A DNA stretch of 64,000 nucleotides from Parasitella parasitica NRRL 2501. Taxonomy: Eukaryota > Fungi > Mucoromycota. Below, in pieces: positions 3,001 through 39,827 of this stretch. The stretch spans positions 1 through 64,000 of the forward strand of contig MU619394.1 in NCBI GenBank assembly GCA_025201805.1, given 5' to 3'. Numbering within the stretch: position 1 is the stretch's first letter; each line of letters opens with the position of its first letter. The position numbers and the translations under genes are program-made. The notes beneath the pieces are model-generated. The model was given only the letters and a program-made list of their open reading frames with translations, searched no databases and was not told where the DNA came from.

Positions 3001-4439
3001 TTTAATTGATAATCAAAAAGATCTGATAAGTTAAACCGTCATACAAACTAAAATACCGGTATACACTCAAACCGACTCAGATTGAACCTCATATATCAAA
3101 AATTGGGTAATAACGAAGAAAATCGACACCGACACTGTAATCCAATTATTCTATGTTGCAAAAATTTAGTAGAAAATGAACTGCAGTCAAATTAGTTATC
3201 ATGTAAAAACGGCATATGATGAAGAGTTTTTCTTTTTCTTTGCATGAACAAATGTATGTTATCGAGCCTAATTCCGAGGCATAGGAGACGTGTCTAATGA
3301 ACAAGGATGTGATACAACGAGTTTACAGGGCAGTAAATTTTCTTGGTATTTTTTTATAGATGTTATTACTCACAGGAAATGATTAGGTTGTATTGGAATC
3401 CAGGAGTATATACGAATATATATAGCTTGGTGTTTTAGAATATTTTGCCTATAATGCCTTTTATTTATGCATGCCATGAAATTTAATTTATGGCAGGCAT
3501 TTCTAGCCACCACATGAGTCTAATCATGTACCACTTACTTAGAAAATGGCAAGGATGCGCATTGAACCAATTAATTCTTGCTCAAGTAATTTTATAAAGA
3601 GAATTAGCTAAGGAGCACTATTTTTGATATTTCAAGAATAAACAGTATTTGTACTTGATTTATTGAGCAAAAGCTGGTCATTGCAATGGCAACTAATTTA
3701 TTAGACCTCAATCTTTCTCTTTTGAAATTGATCCCCCTTTTAACTATAAAAAGGAAATTCCTTTATGACGATTGTTACTATAGACGTTATATTGTATTCG
3801 TTTTTGTAAAATGAACACCCTATTTTACATACTGATGCGCCGACGAACACACAAAAAGGATCTGATAATATATATATACAAAAGAAACGGTTCTAGTTTT
3901 TGTTTCACTCGTCTTTAATACCGAGATTGATTCTTTAATAAGCGTCTATAAAAATCTACTCGGTAATCTACCTTATAACATAAATAGTCCATGATGATTA
4001 GATCAATCAAGTTACTACACATTTGAAAACCTTGTAAAAGTTCAATTTTAAAATCTACCAGGTTTTTAAATTGAGTGCATATCAACTTGATTGCTTTGAA
4101 TAAACAGGCTTCCCATGCTCCTTTCGTTATCTATCGGATGATCAAATAAATCATAACATTTGGTATAAAAAGGACGACTTCCAACTAGCCAATTCAAAGG
4201 TTTCGTTCAACAACATCTCCGATCTAAAGCATAGGTCTTGCGAATTTAGAGATTTTCTATTTTATCAGATCTTTTTTTATCGTTGCACAACCTATTCCTT
4301 CTTTTCCCTAAATCTTATATATAATAGCATCTTTTTTATTTTTCTATATACAATCTTTCTCTTTTATCTTTTACATCTACACTTTTATATTTGGTTTATT
4401 TATTTCCTTATTTCTAGAGATTTTCACTTAGTAATTCAA

Positions 4440-33700: not shown

Positions 33701-35859
33701 TGCTTGATGTTGTATTAGGGGCAGGTAGCTTGACCTCCTCCTCCTTCAAGAAGGCTTGGATACGGCTTAAAGACACATTTGCTTGCAAAAGAAAAGAAGT
33801 AATGATAGGAAGTTCATCCAATGTAGTTTTGAAATTGTTGAACAGCGCAAGAGCAGTGAATGCAGTAGATGCAGTCAAGATGTAGACTCGAGTATAAGCG
33901 TAAAAGACAGCAACCATGATCAAGACAGGGATGATAAACCAGACGTTACCGATCCACATGTAGCTCATTAAACGGGCACGAATGACCTTGAGTTCAGTAT
34001 CTCTTGCTTCCATGATGCGAGCACGGAATTGCTTCTCCCAAGCGAAAAACTTGACGATGCGGATAGCAGACAGCAGCTCATTGACGAGACTGATGCGTTT
34101 GTCCGTGCATTTCATTGCAGCATGTTGCATTCTTTGAAAATGCCTGCTCAGCGCAAACGTTACAGGTTGAGACAGACAAATAATTAAAACGCCCCAAAGA
34201 GAGGCACTGCCCAACAGTTTGTACAGACTCCAGATACAAATGGTGATTTGGATGGGAAAACAGTAAATGTAGAAGATATAAGCCATTAGATCACCTAATT
34301 TCTGAGCGTCCACCGATAGTAAATTGTTGACATTGGCTTTTGGTTTATCCAGTGCAACACTGTTTGCCTTGCTGCTGTTACCTTCTTCGTCTCGGCGTCT
34401 CAATGATTTGCTGTAGACTTCACCGATAACAATAGACTGGATCTGAATACCAAGAGATCTGCCAATGTACAGAGCTTGCTGGTAACACAACGAGTGGCCA
34501 CAAGATGTCAAAAACAAGCAGGAGACATAGATAAAGGCCGACGACACAGTTTCATCTTGTTTACCATGCTCAATAAACTTGATTATCTTGTTTAAAAAGT
34601 AGGGAGGACCAAACATAAGCACAGACCATGCAAGGCAGTAAAAGAATTGAATGGTTAATGGTCTTTTGAACGTGGAAAAAAATTTCAACAGCATTGTAGC
34701 TTTCTTTTGAAGTCGGTAACGTTTCAACGTGTTTTTAGCTCTTTTCTCGGGAGTCACTTCAAACAAATCGTTGTCGTTCAATGTTTTGCGGTTGCCCTTT
34801 TCCATCATCGGGTTCACCCAAGAGAACATGAACCGCGAATAAAATGAAGCCCAATTTTCACCAGACATGACACGCCCCTATTTTTGGTTTTTAGATTGCA
34901 TGGATTACAATGAGTAAAAGATACCAGGACTTACCGTATCTGTAATTATAGGGCTTGCAGGAGCACAGCGGCTTTCATTTGAAACAGCCACTAATAGCAC
35001 CAATGTGATGGTCCCATACATTACTTCATGTTGATATCGTTGGCTCATCTCCAAAATATCATGCACCTGATAATATGCCGTGATATTCACTAATTGAACT
35101 ATAAAATCTAGTATATAAAGGTAGTTTAAATGCGTGCAGATGCTGTTAGAAAGTGATTTTCCGCCGATTGAAAGTGATAGACAGATATTGAGTAGAGCAA
35201 GAACAGCAGCATATGTCTATGGTATATGACTATTAATCAAACATAAAGCTACGCATAGTATCAGGAACCAAATTTACCCAGAATATAATGCGTGCATAAT
35301 ACATGTGCAGCAAATCAGTATATCTCCCTTCAACAACTACATCCATATTTGATTTATCTAATGATAGAGCCATATAAACAAGACATCCTAATTGCAGGCC
35401 TGACAAAAACAACCGCGTCCAGTTGTACGCTGACCATGGCTCACTCAACAATAGCTCAACAGATACAACCGTACTTGAGGTACTAACATCATCATTGCTT
35501 TCTTCGTTGTTGGATGTAGATGATGTGGACGCCGCTCCATAGATTGCATTTGTTTTTTGATTGATTGGCTTATACAGTGCTGTGTTTTCATTTCTACGAG
35601 CTTTAGTGGTTTCAAAGACCAACATAATGCAAGATACCACCACTAGAGCACTTGGCAGTATCGTATTGAGATATCTACGCACAAAATTTAAAACACTACC
35701 CAATTCTCTCTTCTTTTATACATATGTACCTTTCTCTAATACATGGTGTCAAAAAAAGACCGCCCTATATGGTTAGCAATAAAAAAATTCACATGATCAA
35801 TTTCACTTCAACTCCAACACCTTGACTCAAGCCCTTACCCAAAAGTCGCAATCCTCCAT
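30718..35859 (-). CDS. ABCC/MRP-type ABC transporter (Ybt1/Bpt1-like)
   Basis: NBD1 GPTGSGKT and LSGGQKQR; NBD2 GRTGSGKS, WSQGQRQL and LDEATSSVD; two TM domains plus N-terminal TM extension. Inferred first exon MEDCDFW at 35859. Confidence 0.95.
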
Positions 35860-36039
35860 TTTGGTTGTAAACTAAAACAAGAAAAGACAAGGCTATTGTA
35901 TATACAATGCGCCAAGATTCTAAAGAGATTTATGTAAGAAAGAAAGGAGGTACAAGTTGCTTTGAAAGGACCCAATTTATGAAACTTTTCGCAAAAAGGG
36001 AGTTTGTTCCAAATGTAGATTTTATTGCTTGTCATGAAT

Positions 36040-36184
36040 ATCGGGTTAATGTTTTCACCCCAGATTTTTTACTTGCTACTTAAAGAAAAACTTGAGTAAA
36101 AAGAAAATAATGGTTAGGATATTGACTTAAGTTTAGAATGTATATATACTTACATCTGTAAGGAGTATGAGAGAGTTATATCAA
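36040..36184 (-). ncRNA. Putative Fanzor omegaRNA scaffold region containing a 63-nt intron (36091-36153)
   Basis: Directly 3' of the Fanzor stop. GTAAGT...CTAAC...polypyrimidine...CAAG intron; spliced product forms a CAGATTTTTT/AAAAAATCTG stem; GGGT...ACCC hairpin follows. Boundaries are inferred. Confidence 0.5.
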
Positions 36185-37734
36185 TCATACGGGCGAGGTG
36201 TGTCGCTTAAATATGTCTGGACGCTCGTTATTATTGAATACAGCGAAGAGAAAGATGTCCAATATGTTATTTGCGGCCATTATGTCGCGATTCCATACCG
36301 TATTACAAGTGTTTTGCTGACACTGCAATACGGCATGTACTCTTCGCACTGACTTGGCCGTTGTAACATTTTCCAAATTGCGTTCTTTACAGATGTTGCA
36401 AACTTGGCTTGTTAGGTACTCGTCTATCAAGCATATATCTAACGTCTCCCCACAGCGCTTCCTCAATGATTCCTTGATACGTCTTACTGGTGCTGATTTA
36501 TTCCCTCGAAGACTCCCATCATTGAACATCGCATTTCCTAGGGTGAGAATTGTTTTACGAGGTTTGATATAATGATCAATCGGTGTAGGTGGAATATAAC
36601 TAGTTTTTTGTTTCTTTTCTGTCATTCTTGACTTTTCACCGTATTTAGCGCTTCCATATGTAAGTCGTCGGCAGATTTCTTCTATGCATTTTTGTTTTTT
36701 TATGTCACATTTGAACTTAAGCTTGGAAGAACTAGAGTCGAACGTATTAGTAAAAGGTAAATAAATTTAATGTTGAGCGCTTACCGATCATCGCTGTCAT
36801 AATATTTTTTGATATCATCGTATAGATCAAATCGTTCTTTACATGCTTTTACAAAATCTTCTAAGTTAGTTGTCTTGAATGAGCTTAAAGTGGAAATTTT
36901 CTGATATTCGTTCATGTACTGTTTCTTATGCTGCTCTCTTTGTGTGCTAGCAACATTAAAGCCACAAAGGTGGTAGTACTCTTTTAAGCTTGTTGTTCTT
37001 TCTCTTCCTAATTGGTCGACAGCTGTTGTAATATCACGAATTCCCGGATCGATAGCAAAAATCTGGCAGCCAAGTTGAATATCATTAATAAAGTCTGAGG
37101 GTTGCTTTTCAACATAGCCTTCGTTTTTCTTCTTTACAGCACGAATAAAATGGAAAAAAAACTGAATAGCCATCTGTGGTAATCACATTACTAATACAAG
37201 GACAGTGCTATTTCTCAACAAAATCAAAGAAGCTTACTTGAAACGTTTTTTGCCCGTCGACAGACTTTCTCTTGTTCGAAATCCAAGCTTAGAAAAACGG
37301 AAAAGATTATGATGGGCATCTGTTAGCTCGGTTTCTGTCTTTTTGCCTGACCGATATCATGGTACGTCGGATTGTTTAACCAACCTCCACAGTGCTTGGG
37401 CTTCTATTTGTATTGCTTTGCTCTGTACAGTATAAACAGGAGCGATTGTGAAAAAGCGATAACCTCTAGGATCAGTATATTTGGCCGGGAAAAATGTTCC
37501 ATCGTCAATCCGTGCTTTGACGGTATCTATAAAGTGCTGGATAATTGAAATCTGCTGTGCAGTGAGTAAGGATAATTTTCTCCCTGATACAAAAGTCTCA
37601 TTCGAGTTAATCGACTGCAGAACTTGCTCTTGTAAAGATGGGAATTGCTTTCTGCTCAAAGTTTGAATGAATTGAATTTCTTGAAGTTTTCGATATACAT
37701 AGCCTTTACTAGCAACTTTTGACGGTGAAAAAAT
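36185..37734 (-). pseudogene. Fanzor (eukaryotic TnpB-like RuvC nuclease), 5'-truncated and disrupted, with 2 coding introns
   Basis: RuvC-I FAIDPGIRD, RuvC-II IDEYLTSQ followed by zinc finger CNIC...CQQNTC, RuvC-III WNRDIMAANNI; upstream TDGYSV and FFTIAP blocks. Introns 37191-37237 and 36732-36784. In-frame TGA at 37357-37359; +1 frameshift in the A8 run 37154-37161. Confidence 0.9.
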
Positions 37735-39827
37735 TCAATTTCAAGTGAATGATAAAGGTCATGGTGATTTTGATGACATGTATTAGGGTTTTTGATAACA
37801 AACCTTTTATTTCTGATAAAAGCTGAGAAGTTTCTGAGAGAAGAGAAATGTCTCTCGAAGAATATTTCAAGTAGTATTTCTATTTTAGATTAAAAATGCC
37901 CAAGAATAGGGAACGTCTTGAAATAATATGCGAGATTGCGACGCCCTAATTATTTTATTTTTGATCAAACAGCCATTGTGCAAGAACGATAGGTATTTTT
38001 AAATGAATGACTATTTGGGTTTTTTAATAACCATTTTTCAATACAATGAAAAGACTTTAGCGACACTGACGACATGAACTTCAGATACCTGTAACTGAAC
38101 AATCACAAACGGATCACAATACAGAATTGTTTGAATTTCATAATTGATAAATTAATTCAGATATATCTGTTATTGGACATCTAAATAAGCCTAAATATTC
38201 AGACAAGTCATTGGTTTTTAAAATAAAAAATGGTTAAACCACAAAACCTTCAAAGTATCAAACAGTATATATTAATGCATGTACTCCTCAAATTATGCAT
38301 TTACACAATGGAAAATCATAACAGATTCTGCAAACGACAATCTCTATTTTTTTAACTTCATACCTATTATCATTTTGTGTTACATCTGTTACGTTAGGTC
38401 AGCATATTGAATATCAAAGAAAGAATATACTGTCAGGACTAGTTATAACAAAAATGTGTTTGGTATAGCGAATTATCCCTTAATGAAAATTTGATACTTA
38501 AAAGTACAGTGCCTGGGACCTGGAATCTACAAGAAGCTTATTATGAAGCTTAACTTTTGATAGTAAAACTACCTCGAACTCAATCTTAACTTCTATTTTA
38601 CTTTCTATTTTACATGTTTAGCATTATAATCACAAAAAAGGGAACTCTTGAACTGGCACCAAGCATTATTATAAGCAACAATGGTAATAGAGCTTCTCTG
38701 CCACTAGTAATTTATAAATTTTGAATTATTCACATACAACAAGGGGTAACTACAGCAAAGTATTCATTAATTATCCTCTTCCGCTTCCAACTCGATGGGT
38801 CACACCTGTTTTATCATATTACTATGAAGAAAAGTATACTTGCGGTATCAAAAATACCCACTTTATAGAGCTATGTCAAATACTAGAATTAATATTAACG
38901 TAATATCCTCTCCAGACACATGTTTTTTACTGCTTAAAAACAAGAACTTTAGTTTTGTGTGTCATTTTTTGATTGATTTTGATAATCAAAAGTGTCCTGA
39001 AAACACCAGAAATAGTATCTATTGGGAAAAAACTATATTATATATGATTTTGGTGCAATTTGAGCATGATTTTTTTTTCGATGCAAAATCATGAATTTTT
39101 TCGATTTTTTCCTTGTATCCACACATCAAAAATCATCAATTATGCATTATCCTCGATTTTGACCTCAAAAATGCAACTTTTGACTATGACATATATTGGA
39201 GGAAAAGGATCGTAAAAGACCATTCCATGATCTGAAAGACTGGCAATGCGTTTTGATTAAGCAAAATATTGACTTTTTCCTCTTAATCTGTTTTTGATGT
39301 TTTTTGGCAGAAATCCTTCTATAAGCATACGGGAATCATGAAATGGTACCATTGTGTAGAGCGCCCAAAAATACAGCTATTATCATAGACTGACAGCCGT
39401 GGTATGTATAGTATCAGAGGATGATATCTTGCCTTAAAGAAGTAATTTTGTTTTCTGATTGTACAAATGGAGTTTCTGAAAGAACTTTTCTTTTCTGATT
39501 TTGGATGCGTTTAATCTCCGCCATCAAACAAAATTGGTGTAATTTTTAAAGAAAGCGTTAGCTTTGAGAAGCCACAGCTTATCCAATTTAAGAGAGAAAC
39601 AATTGAAGCCTAGTTTATTTAAATTGTGTACTTCGTGGCTTTCTAATGGTAGCACTCGCATGTCTGTACCTGGCCAGACGATCTCACGCTCCGACTTTGA
39701 AAAATACTTTTCCAAAAAAGTCGTTCCTTTCATCTGATGTCAACTTGAAAAGTACAAAAACTTGCTCTAGGCTATGCAAAAGTTTGATCAAAAGGTGCCT
39801 TATAGTCTAATGCATTACTTTGAATTA

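Follow-up and report, generated by a model that had tools for sequence, protein, structure and literature searches.

The window (the whole stretch of DNA analysed, 64,000 nucleotides of contig MU619394.1 of Parasitella parasitica NRRL 2501) carries on its minus strand the 3′ part of a gene that, judged by its protein motifs, is a Fanzor1, a eukaryotic TnpB-like RNA-guided nuclease (Table 1). Its last coding exon matches the Cas12f1-like TNB domain (Pfam PF07282, 28.5 bits against a cutoff of 26.3) as well as the C-terminus of the Guillardia theta Fanzor1 (GtFz1, PDB chain 9cer, E 3e-5). All three residues of the RuvC triad can be located (D in FAIDPGIRD, E in IDEYLTSQVC and D in WNRDIMAANNI), the rearranged RuvC-II glutamate lies 7 residues before the first Cys of the zinc finger, and the protein ends ∼30 residues past the RuvC-III motif, as it does in relatives.

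Table 1. Features of the Fanzor1 fragment and its surroundings in the window
Feature	Positions	Strand	Remarks
Probable degenerate remnant of the right terminus, with 6-nt filler	36061..36083	(-)	Family terminus TTAAAGTAGAAAAACTG; holds the 3′ stem arm 36070-36061
First 7 nt (TTTTTCT) of the 18-nt micro-exon of family 1	36084..36090	(-)	Family homology stops here; 8-copy alignment
Internal 1.6-kb fragment of a 3.8-kb Fanzor1-carrying Tc1/mariner-like element, family 1	36084..37680	(-)	97.4% identity; corresponds to L030:3571-5163 only
Intron 1	36091..36153	(-)	63 nt, GTAAGT .. CTAAC .. CAAG; junction in an RNA contig of sister copies
UACAG box just 5′ of the donor	36156..36160	(-)	Conserved in all lineages; complementary to the element-ending CUGUA
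Hairpin SL1 (GUAUGA, 14-nt loop, UCAUAC)	36165..36190	(-)	Overlaps the stop codon; candidate first stem-loop of the omega RNA
Last coding exon of the Fanzor gene	36185..36731	(-)	TNB zinc finger, RuvC-II E in IDEYLTSQVC, RuvC-III D in WNRDIMAANNI; stop TGA 36187-36185
Coding intron, 53 nt, GT..AG	36732..36784	(-)	Homologous L030 4465-4517 skipped in a 2606-nt RNA contig
Coding intron, 47 nt, GT..AG	37191..37237	(-)	Homologous L030 4014-4060 skipped in the same 2606-nt RNA contig
Premature stop TGA; TGG (Trp) in intact copies	37357..37359	(-)	Window ORF ends ..KQSDVP*; L030 reads ..KQSDVPWYRSGKK..
Unrelated dispersed repeat in place of the missing 5′ part of the Fanzor element	37681..38400	.	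57 matches, 70-86% identity, genome-wide

The copy in the window is a dead, inert relic, since it is truncated on its 5′ side, carries a nonsense codon and loses all family homology at 36084. A whole-genome search returned seven further copies (97–98% identical), every one of which diverges from the window at that position, 7 nt past the acceptor of intron 1; from there the sister copies run on together in a different sequence, and the window flank beyond the breakpoint (35500–36083) is single copy in the genome. Missing from the fragment are the left ∼1.96 kb of the full unit and the greater part of its right ∼260 nt, the right end of full copies being reached about 270 nt further on, and with this loss and the TGG-to-TGA change no intact full-length Fanzor1 protein is encoded at the locus.

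The full family-1 unit, for which the sister copy L030 serves as reference, is ∼3.8 kb long and is bounded by 190-bp terminal inverted repeats of 96% identity. Its termini read TA/CAG...CTG/TA (four left ends and six right ends), which are the TA target-site duplication and inverted CAG..CTG termini of a Tc1/mariner-type element. The ORF lists contain no transposase gene between the L030 repeats, where the Fanzor gene stands alone, and by this gene content the element would be non-autonomous. L030 is the only sister copy that can be read end to end, most of the others (L028, L029 and L031–L034) having N over much of the Fanzor ORF; it has an in-frame stop of its own at 4362–4364, which is absent from the expressed RNA contig (A to T at 4363). 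In intact copies the stop codon of the Fanzor gene and the right end of the element are 366 nt apart, and different genera share the right terminus itself (..GAATTTAAAG TRCRRAWACYGTA). In four full copies inserted independently (L028, L030, L032 and L033) the left flank always presents AAA(A)TA before CAG, and the right flanks have nothing in common after the TA. Such a one-sided preference looks like a TAM and not like a transposase target, and it is compatible with the ATN TAM of PpFz1.

An earlier note, made from the DNA letters of the window, had proposed that an intron-like segment behind the Fanzor stop codon interrupts the omega RNA region and that its removal builds a hairpin. Each of the signals it named is present on the minus strand: the stop codon TGA (36187–36185), the donor GTAAGT 31 nt 3′ of the stop (36153–36148), the branch-point motif CTAAC (36117–36113), and a T-rich tract followed by the acceptor CAAG with its last base at 36091, which together delimit 63 nt. 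Joining 36154 to 36090 brings CAGATTTTTT (36158–36154 plus 36090–36086) opposite AAAAAATCTG (36070–36061) in a perfect 10-bp stem, continued by CTT/AAG (3 bp) past a 1-nt bulge, and ViennaRNA returns the same fold at –9.7 kcal/mol. When flanks are drawn at random from the window, the probability of a junction-spanning perfect stem of 10 bp is P = 0.0013, so the stem exceeds what chance would easily produce. The resemblance to host introns in size and signals also holds, as two coding introns of this gene, 47 and 53 nt long, are spliced in the RNA of sister copies.

Direct evidence for splicing comes from run X1 (Parasitella parasitica, 23 million letters), the contigs of which were compared with L030:2300–5500. 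The run is cDNA-like, in that the 2606-nt contig skips both GT..AG coding introns. At L030 5093, the base before GTAAGT, an RNA contig reads ..CAGAT and then 18 nt identical to those found behind the acceptor in sister copies, and it terminates precisely at a second donor GT, as expected if the assembly graph branches there. The junction has zero matches in genomic DNA at ≤2 mismatches; its support is one contig of one small run, and the letters are those of full copies and not of the window copy. The 36154/36090 junction that the earlier note predicted is thus found in RNA, and because this exon-exon junction is absent from genomic DNA, the 63-nt segment, with its consensus GT-AG signals and host-typical size, is with high confidence a genuine spliceosomal intron (intron 1) whose splicing in RNA we regard as established. 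Splicing is partial and retention is common, since an unspliced 101-nt contig spans the intron at a depth of 137.5. The assembly contains no genomic copy that lacks intron 1, or intron 2 as described below, and an Rfam search of L030:4900–5460 gave no family at threshold and no group I intron of the IStron kind. Transcripts sought through protein matches and their encoding contigs were genomic-type, unspliced contigs only, and the junction predicted for Rhizopus arrhizus found no match in a metagenome scan. A further RNA contig of low depth (15.1) skips 53 nt bounded by CT..AC (L030:5082–5134, about 36165–36113 in the window); it may come from an antisense transcript that runs over intron 1 and is itself spliced, with GT..AG on the other strand, or it may be a deletion variant.

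To gather relatives, the last exon was searched at the protein level and the contigs encoding the matches were retrieved; their 3′ ends were compared across Rhizopus microsporus, R. arrhizus, two Logan assemblies, several metagenomes and a second Parasitella family (family 2, 76% identity). The hairpin SL1 is present in all of them with 6–7 bp and a nearly invariant 14-nt loop, and it overlaps the stop codon in most, the stop lying upstream of it in family 2, L047, L048 and L049. In a set of 12 sequences representing at least 8 lineages, the share of paired cells is 95.2% against 84.1% in shuffles (0/500), compensatory changes occur in 4 of the 7 pairs (e.g. GUGUCA/UGAUAC and GUGUGC/GCACAC), and sliding the partner reduces pairing to 5–61%. 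Conservation and covariation of SL1 are thereby established.

These data also bear on GTATGA at 36190, a hexamer with an initial GT that runs into the stop codon and that the earlier note had flagged as a possible donor of a terminal coding intron that would own the downstream signals. This is extremely improbable: the motif is the 5′ arm of SL1, its partner UCAUAC lies 14 nt downstream and relatives show compensatory changes in this pairing, the stop precedes the hairpin altogether in the four groups just named, the junction seen in RNA lies at GTAAGT instead, and the protein already ends where its relatives do. We therefore rejected this candidate. A hairpin CUUAC/GUAAG over the donor was likewise discarded as a conserved second stem, as L036, L039, L043, L048 and family 2 show no consistent pairing there.

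Just 3′ of the UACAG box a donor (GTAAGT, GTGAGT, GTGAGA or GTAAAT) is kept in 8 of 10 lineages, even though the intron interiors beyond it cannot be aligned between lineages. The CUGUA at the element end consists of the terminal CTG plus the TA target duplication, and because this terminus is fixed by the transposon, the UACAG/CUGUA helix is invariant and gives no covariation signal. Covariation is seen at SL1 instead. In family 2 the 3′ half of the intron (CACCAA..TTTGG) was considered as a structure resembling the SL1 of PpFz1 and dropped, as the related L049 keeps the branch-point motif without the stem. In two family-2 copies (L010 and L023) deletions have taken away the donor together with the beginning of the intron, whereas the branch-point region, acceptor and terminal hairpin are kept. 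A metagenome scan with the SL1 loop gave 120 matches, all of them to an unrelated GTGACATGACTC satellite; TGACATGACTCTCTCATA belongs to a tandem satellite (GTGACATGACTCATTCATAT-like units) of several JGI metagenomes (L054–L133) that has no relation to Fanzor.

If the 366 nt between stop codon and right end of intact family-1 copies are the precursor of the guide RNA, then they would comprise, in order, SL1, the UACAG box, intron 1, the 18-nt micro-exon, a putative intron 2 and a final 13-nt exon. The putative intron 2 (213–236 nt) would contain nearly the whole right terminal repeat; its signals are the donor GTAAAT, a branch-point-like ATTAAC and the acceptor ..TTTAAAG 13 nt before the element end, and its removal would join ..TTTTCTAAG to TAGAAAAACTGTA plus the copy-specific flank. 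With both introns out, the product would be a 68-nt scaffold made of SL1 and a 16-bp hairpin, SL2, modelled as UACAG-AU-UUUUUCUGCUU / AAGUAGAAAAA-CUGUA (MFE of the 68-nt model about –21 kcal/mol). The 5′ arm of SL2 would be formed by UACAG and the micro-exon and the 3′ arm by the right terminus, the UACAG/CUGUA helix closing SL2 in every spliced model. The spliced 5′ arm closely resembles the left terminus (TA CAG TTTTTCTACTT), and intron 1 would therefore split an internal mimic of the left end. Flanking host sequence would follow the scaffold directly, as the position of a guide requires.

The same layout recurs in L036, L039 and L043, each with two introns, a micro-exon of 8–15 nt and a last exon of 13 nt, and in a simpler form in R. 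arrhizus (L050; one 86-nt intron and a 14-nt last exon). Conservation of the donor and of the exon layout across genera is established. The spliced models of the five lineages are 51–68 nt long and consist of two hairpins with a last exon of 13–14 nt ending in CTGTA. When spliced and unspliced forms are folded side by side, a check the earlier note had proposed, their z-scores against dinucleotide shuffles are –6.6/–1.7, –2.2/0.15, –3.1/0.18, –1.3/–0.24 and –1.3/0.15, that is –6.6 to –1.3 for the spliced and –1.7 to +0.2 for the unspliced RNAs, the spliced values being weak in two lineages (–1.3 in both). For family 2, where 21 nt separate the acceptor from the end of the element, the spliced model measures 85 nt and terminates in a 9-bp hairpin, with a predicted junction (e.g. 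in L009) of ..CATTACAG joined to CATCTCCG. The version in R. microsporus L035 is compact, at 83 nt too short to accommodate an intron; reading it as a 76-nt intron plus a terminal hairpin was rejected, since the conserved terminus ..GAATTTAAAAGTGCGAAAACTGTA lies inside that stretch, so the element ends there. As regards a candidate omega RNA, SL1 covaries, and the spliced models, as predicted structures, end at the element terminus.

It is unlikely that these are ordinary 3′-UTR introns of the Fanzor mRNA, with the guide derived from another transcript or from unspliced RNA and the hairpin at the stop codon serving as an mRNA element. The junction contig can be assigned neither to mRNA nor to a small RNA, unspliced RNA is abundant at the depth given above, and the published Fanzor omega RNAs were all defined without splicing, each of which would fit such introns. 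However, a guide must be covalently linked to its scaffold, and without splicing 340–366 nt would separate SL1, the only covarying structure, from the right end. In addition, five lineages have a last exon of 13–14 nt, folding is far better than chance for the spliced products but not for the unspliced ones, and the family-2 acceptor is only 21 nt away from the element end.

Less probable still is a model in which splicing competes with guide formation as in IStrons, the unspliced RNA being the functional guide that splicing destroys or down-regulates. Both forms do exist, conflict between intron and omega RNA has a precedent in IStrons (PMC10690162), and any activity of the compact element of R. 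microsporus would have to be independent of splicing. Against this, the arms of SL2 are ∼300 nt apart in the unspliced RNA, which carries no excess structure (z –1.7 to +0.2), and a scaffold of 366 nt would be far longer than the known Fanzor1 scaffolds of 49–150 nt.

We infer that intron 2 is spliced as well and that the spliced RNA is the guide bound by the nuclease. At the level of the family this spliced-guide model is plausible and supported, though unproven, and its chances appear even or slightly better; common retention of intron 1, the intron-less L035 and the omega RNA of PpFz1, which needs no splicing, count against it. What the earlier note had said of the segment holds in part: the region in which it lies should encode the scaffold, while the spliced RNA as the nuclease-bound form belongs to the model; and splicing would indeed build a long hairpin whose 5′ arm spans the junction in intact copies, whereas the copy it was read from is dead.

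The hairpin of the window requires a separate explanation. AAAAAATCTG is absent from the next 400 nt of intact copies, so the stem as drawn in the window is no feature of the family, and the earlier note's 3′ arm (36070–36061) is not normal family sequence. In intact copies the final 13 nt of the transposon serve as the partner arm; they are ∼235 nt away, and only removal of the second intron would bring them close. We consider that the window hairpin is probably a decayed SL2 that took shape after a DNA deletion. In that event the remainder of the micro-exon would have been lost together with almost the entire intron 2, and the deletion, not a second intron, would have placed the right-terminus arm nearby. 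Splicing of intron 1 alone would then restore the decayed SL2 in the window, because the deletion took from the DNA what intron 2 removal takes from the RNA. Consistent with this, the 23 nt past the breakpoint resemble the terminus TTAAAGTAGAAAAACTG in an anchored alignment with a 6-nt insertion (P 0.0003–0.003 against random 29-mers of the window), although their ungapped identity is only ∼75% and no TA follows the CTG.

Alternatively, the hairpin may be pure chance, with the T-run at the junction meeting an A-run of unrelated single-copy flank after a simple truncation at 36084. BLAST homology does stop at 36084, the flank is single copy and its 24-nt end sequence is unique in the genome, the CTG is without its TA, the ∼75% ungapped identity to the terminus contrasts with 97% for the rest of the copy, and the site was picked for its stem, a selection effect. 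We nevertheless hold chance to be the less likely reading, as both the stem with random flanks (P = 0.0013) and a terminus similarity that starts right at the breakpoint (P = 0.0003–0.003) are hard to obtain in that way and a related terminus variant, ..TTTAAAGTAAAAAAACGGTA, occurs among the RNA contigs. The locus by itself has small value, being a relic, although its partly deleted end displays, by accident, the second hairpin.

The explanation as a whole, namely a genuine intron 1, a 68-nt scaffold spliced from two introns and an inert window copy with a decayed SL2, is in our judgement the probable one, by a modest measure. For the wider proposal, that in a Fanzor1 lineage of the Mucorales the host spliceosome assembles the guide RNA by removing the transposase-binding interior of the right terminal repeat, the scales are evenly balanced. 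If true, guide RNAs would have a biogenesis route not described before, in which the scaffold comes into being through the spliceosome alone, and an RNA-guided nuclease of eukaryotes would depend for its activity on Pol II transcription and on splicing in the nucleus. The proposal would also account for how a Fanzor cassette can reside on transposons whose long terminal repeats must bind transposase, and it would mean that for intron-rich hosts omega RNAs may be wrong when they are predicted from genomic sequence alone or have been defined in vitro, in yeast or in bacteria. The spliced models provide directly testable scaffolds of 51–68 nt for genome editing.

To our knowledge, the characterised Fanzor and TnpB guide RNAs are all contiguous transcripts of the element end. 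Introns have been described in Fanzor coding regions only (PMC10530073), neither Saito 2023 (PMC10432273) nor Xu 2024 (PMC11423790) uses the word ‘intron’ in its main text, and a full-text search of the literature found no spliceosomal intron in an omega RNA, the bacterial IStron (PMC10690162) being the nearest precedent. Omega RNAs (fRNAs) have been defined for the Fanzor1 proteins PpFz1, SpuFz1 and GtFz1 (Saito 2023, PMC10432273; Jiang 2023, PMC10530073; Xu 2024, PMC11423790). Like the RNAs proposed here, they are the 3′ non-coding end of the element, abut its right end and take the guide from the flank, with one stem-loop close to the ORF end or right at it and another, short one beside the guide. 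PpFz1 comes from the same host species, and its 49-nt scaffold of SL1 and a short SL2 (PMC11423790) compares with the 51–68 nt predicted here; it belongs to another family and its omega RNA needs no splicing. In contrast to the published scaffolds, which are contiguous in DNA, SL1 is here parted from the terminus by one or two introns that hold the interior of the terminal repeat. The sequence of SL1 also differs from the published ones, as does the protein family from PpFz1, the PDB match being to GtFz1 only. Two decayed PpFz1-type loci with the published SL1 CCACCAAAGTTATCGCTTTGG are present in the assembly (L037, G000:C6:393300-396320, and L038, G000:C101), which holds one exact copy of that SL1 and one with 2 mismatches. 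PpFz1 binds cyclophilins via its FRI insertion, a human U4/U6 snRNP cyclophilin being among those tested (PMC11423790), and given a splice-dependent guide this binding raises the possibility of a physical link to the spliceosome.

IStrons, bacterial IS605/IS607 elements that combine a group I intron with TnpB (PMC10690162, PMC13521648), are likewise transposons in which the guide-RNA region overlaps an intron and splicing is coupled with guide biogenesis on one transcript. Their introns are self-splicing and antagonistic, the group I intron and the omega RNA competing with each other (PMC10690162), whereas those described here are spliceosomal (GT..AG, branch point, 62–236 nt) and their splicing is predicted to build the scaffold. 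With non-autonomous Tc1/mariner elements the present family shares the TA duplication, the CAG..CTG termini, long inverted and subterminal repeats and a 3.8-kb unit without transposase, but it adds a Fanzor1 gene, a putative guide-RNA precursor and an internal, intron-interrupted mimic of its own left terminus. Finally, like the 3′-UTR introns that ordinary genes of fungi contain, the segment has canonical signals and host-typical size, lies downstream of the stop codon and is partly retained. Unlike them, it keeps its position across genera within a mobile element, and in the model its exon pieces (8–18 and 13–14 nt) pair with each other only once they are spliced.
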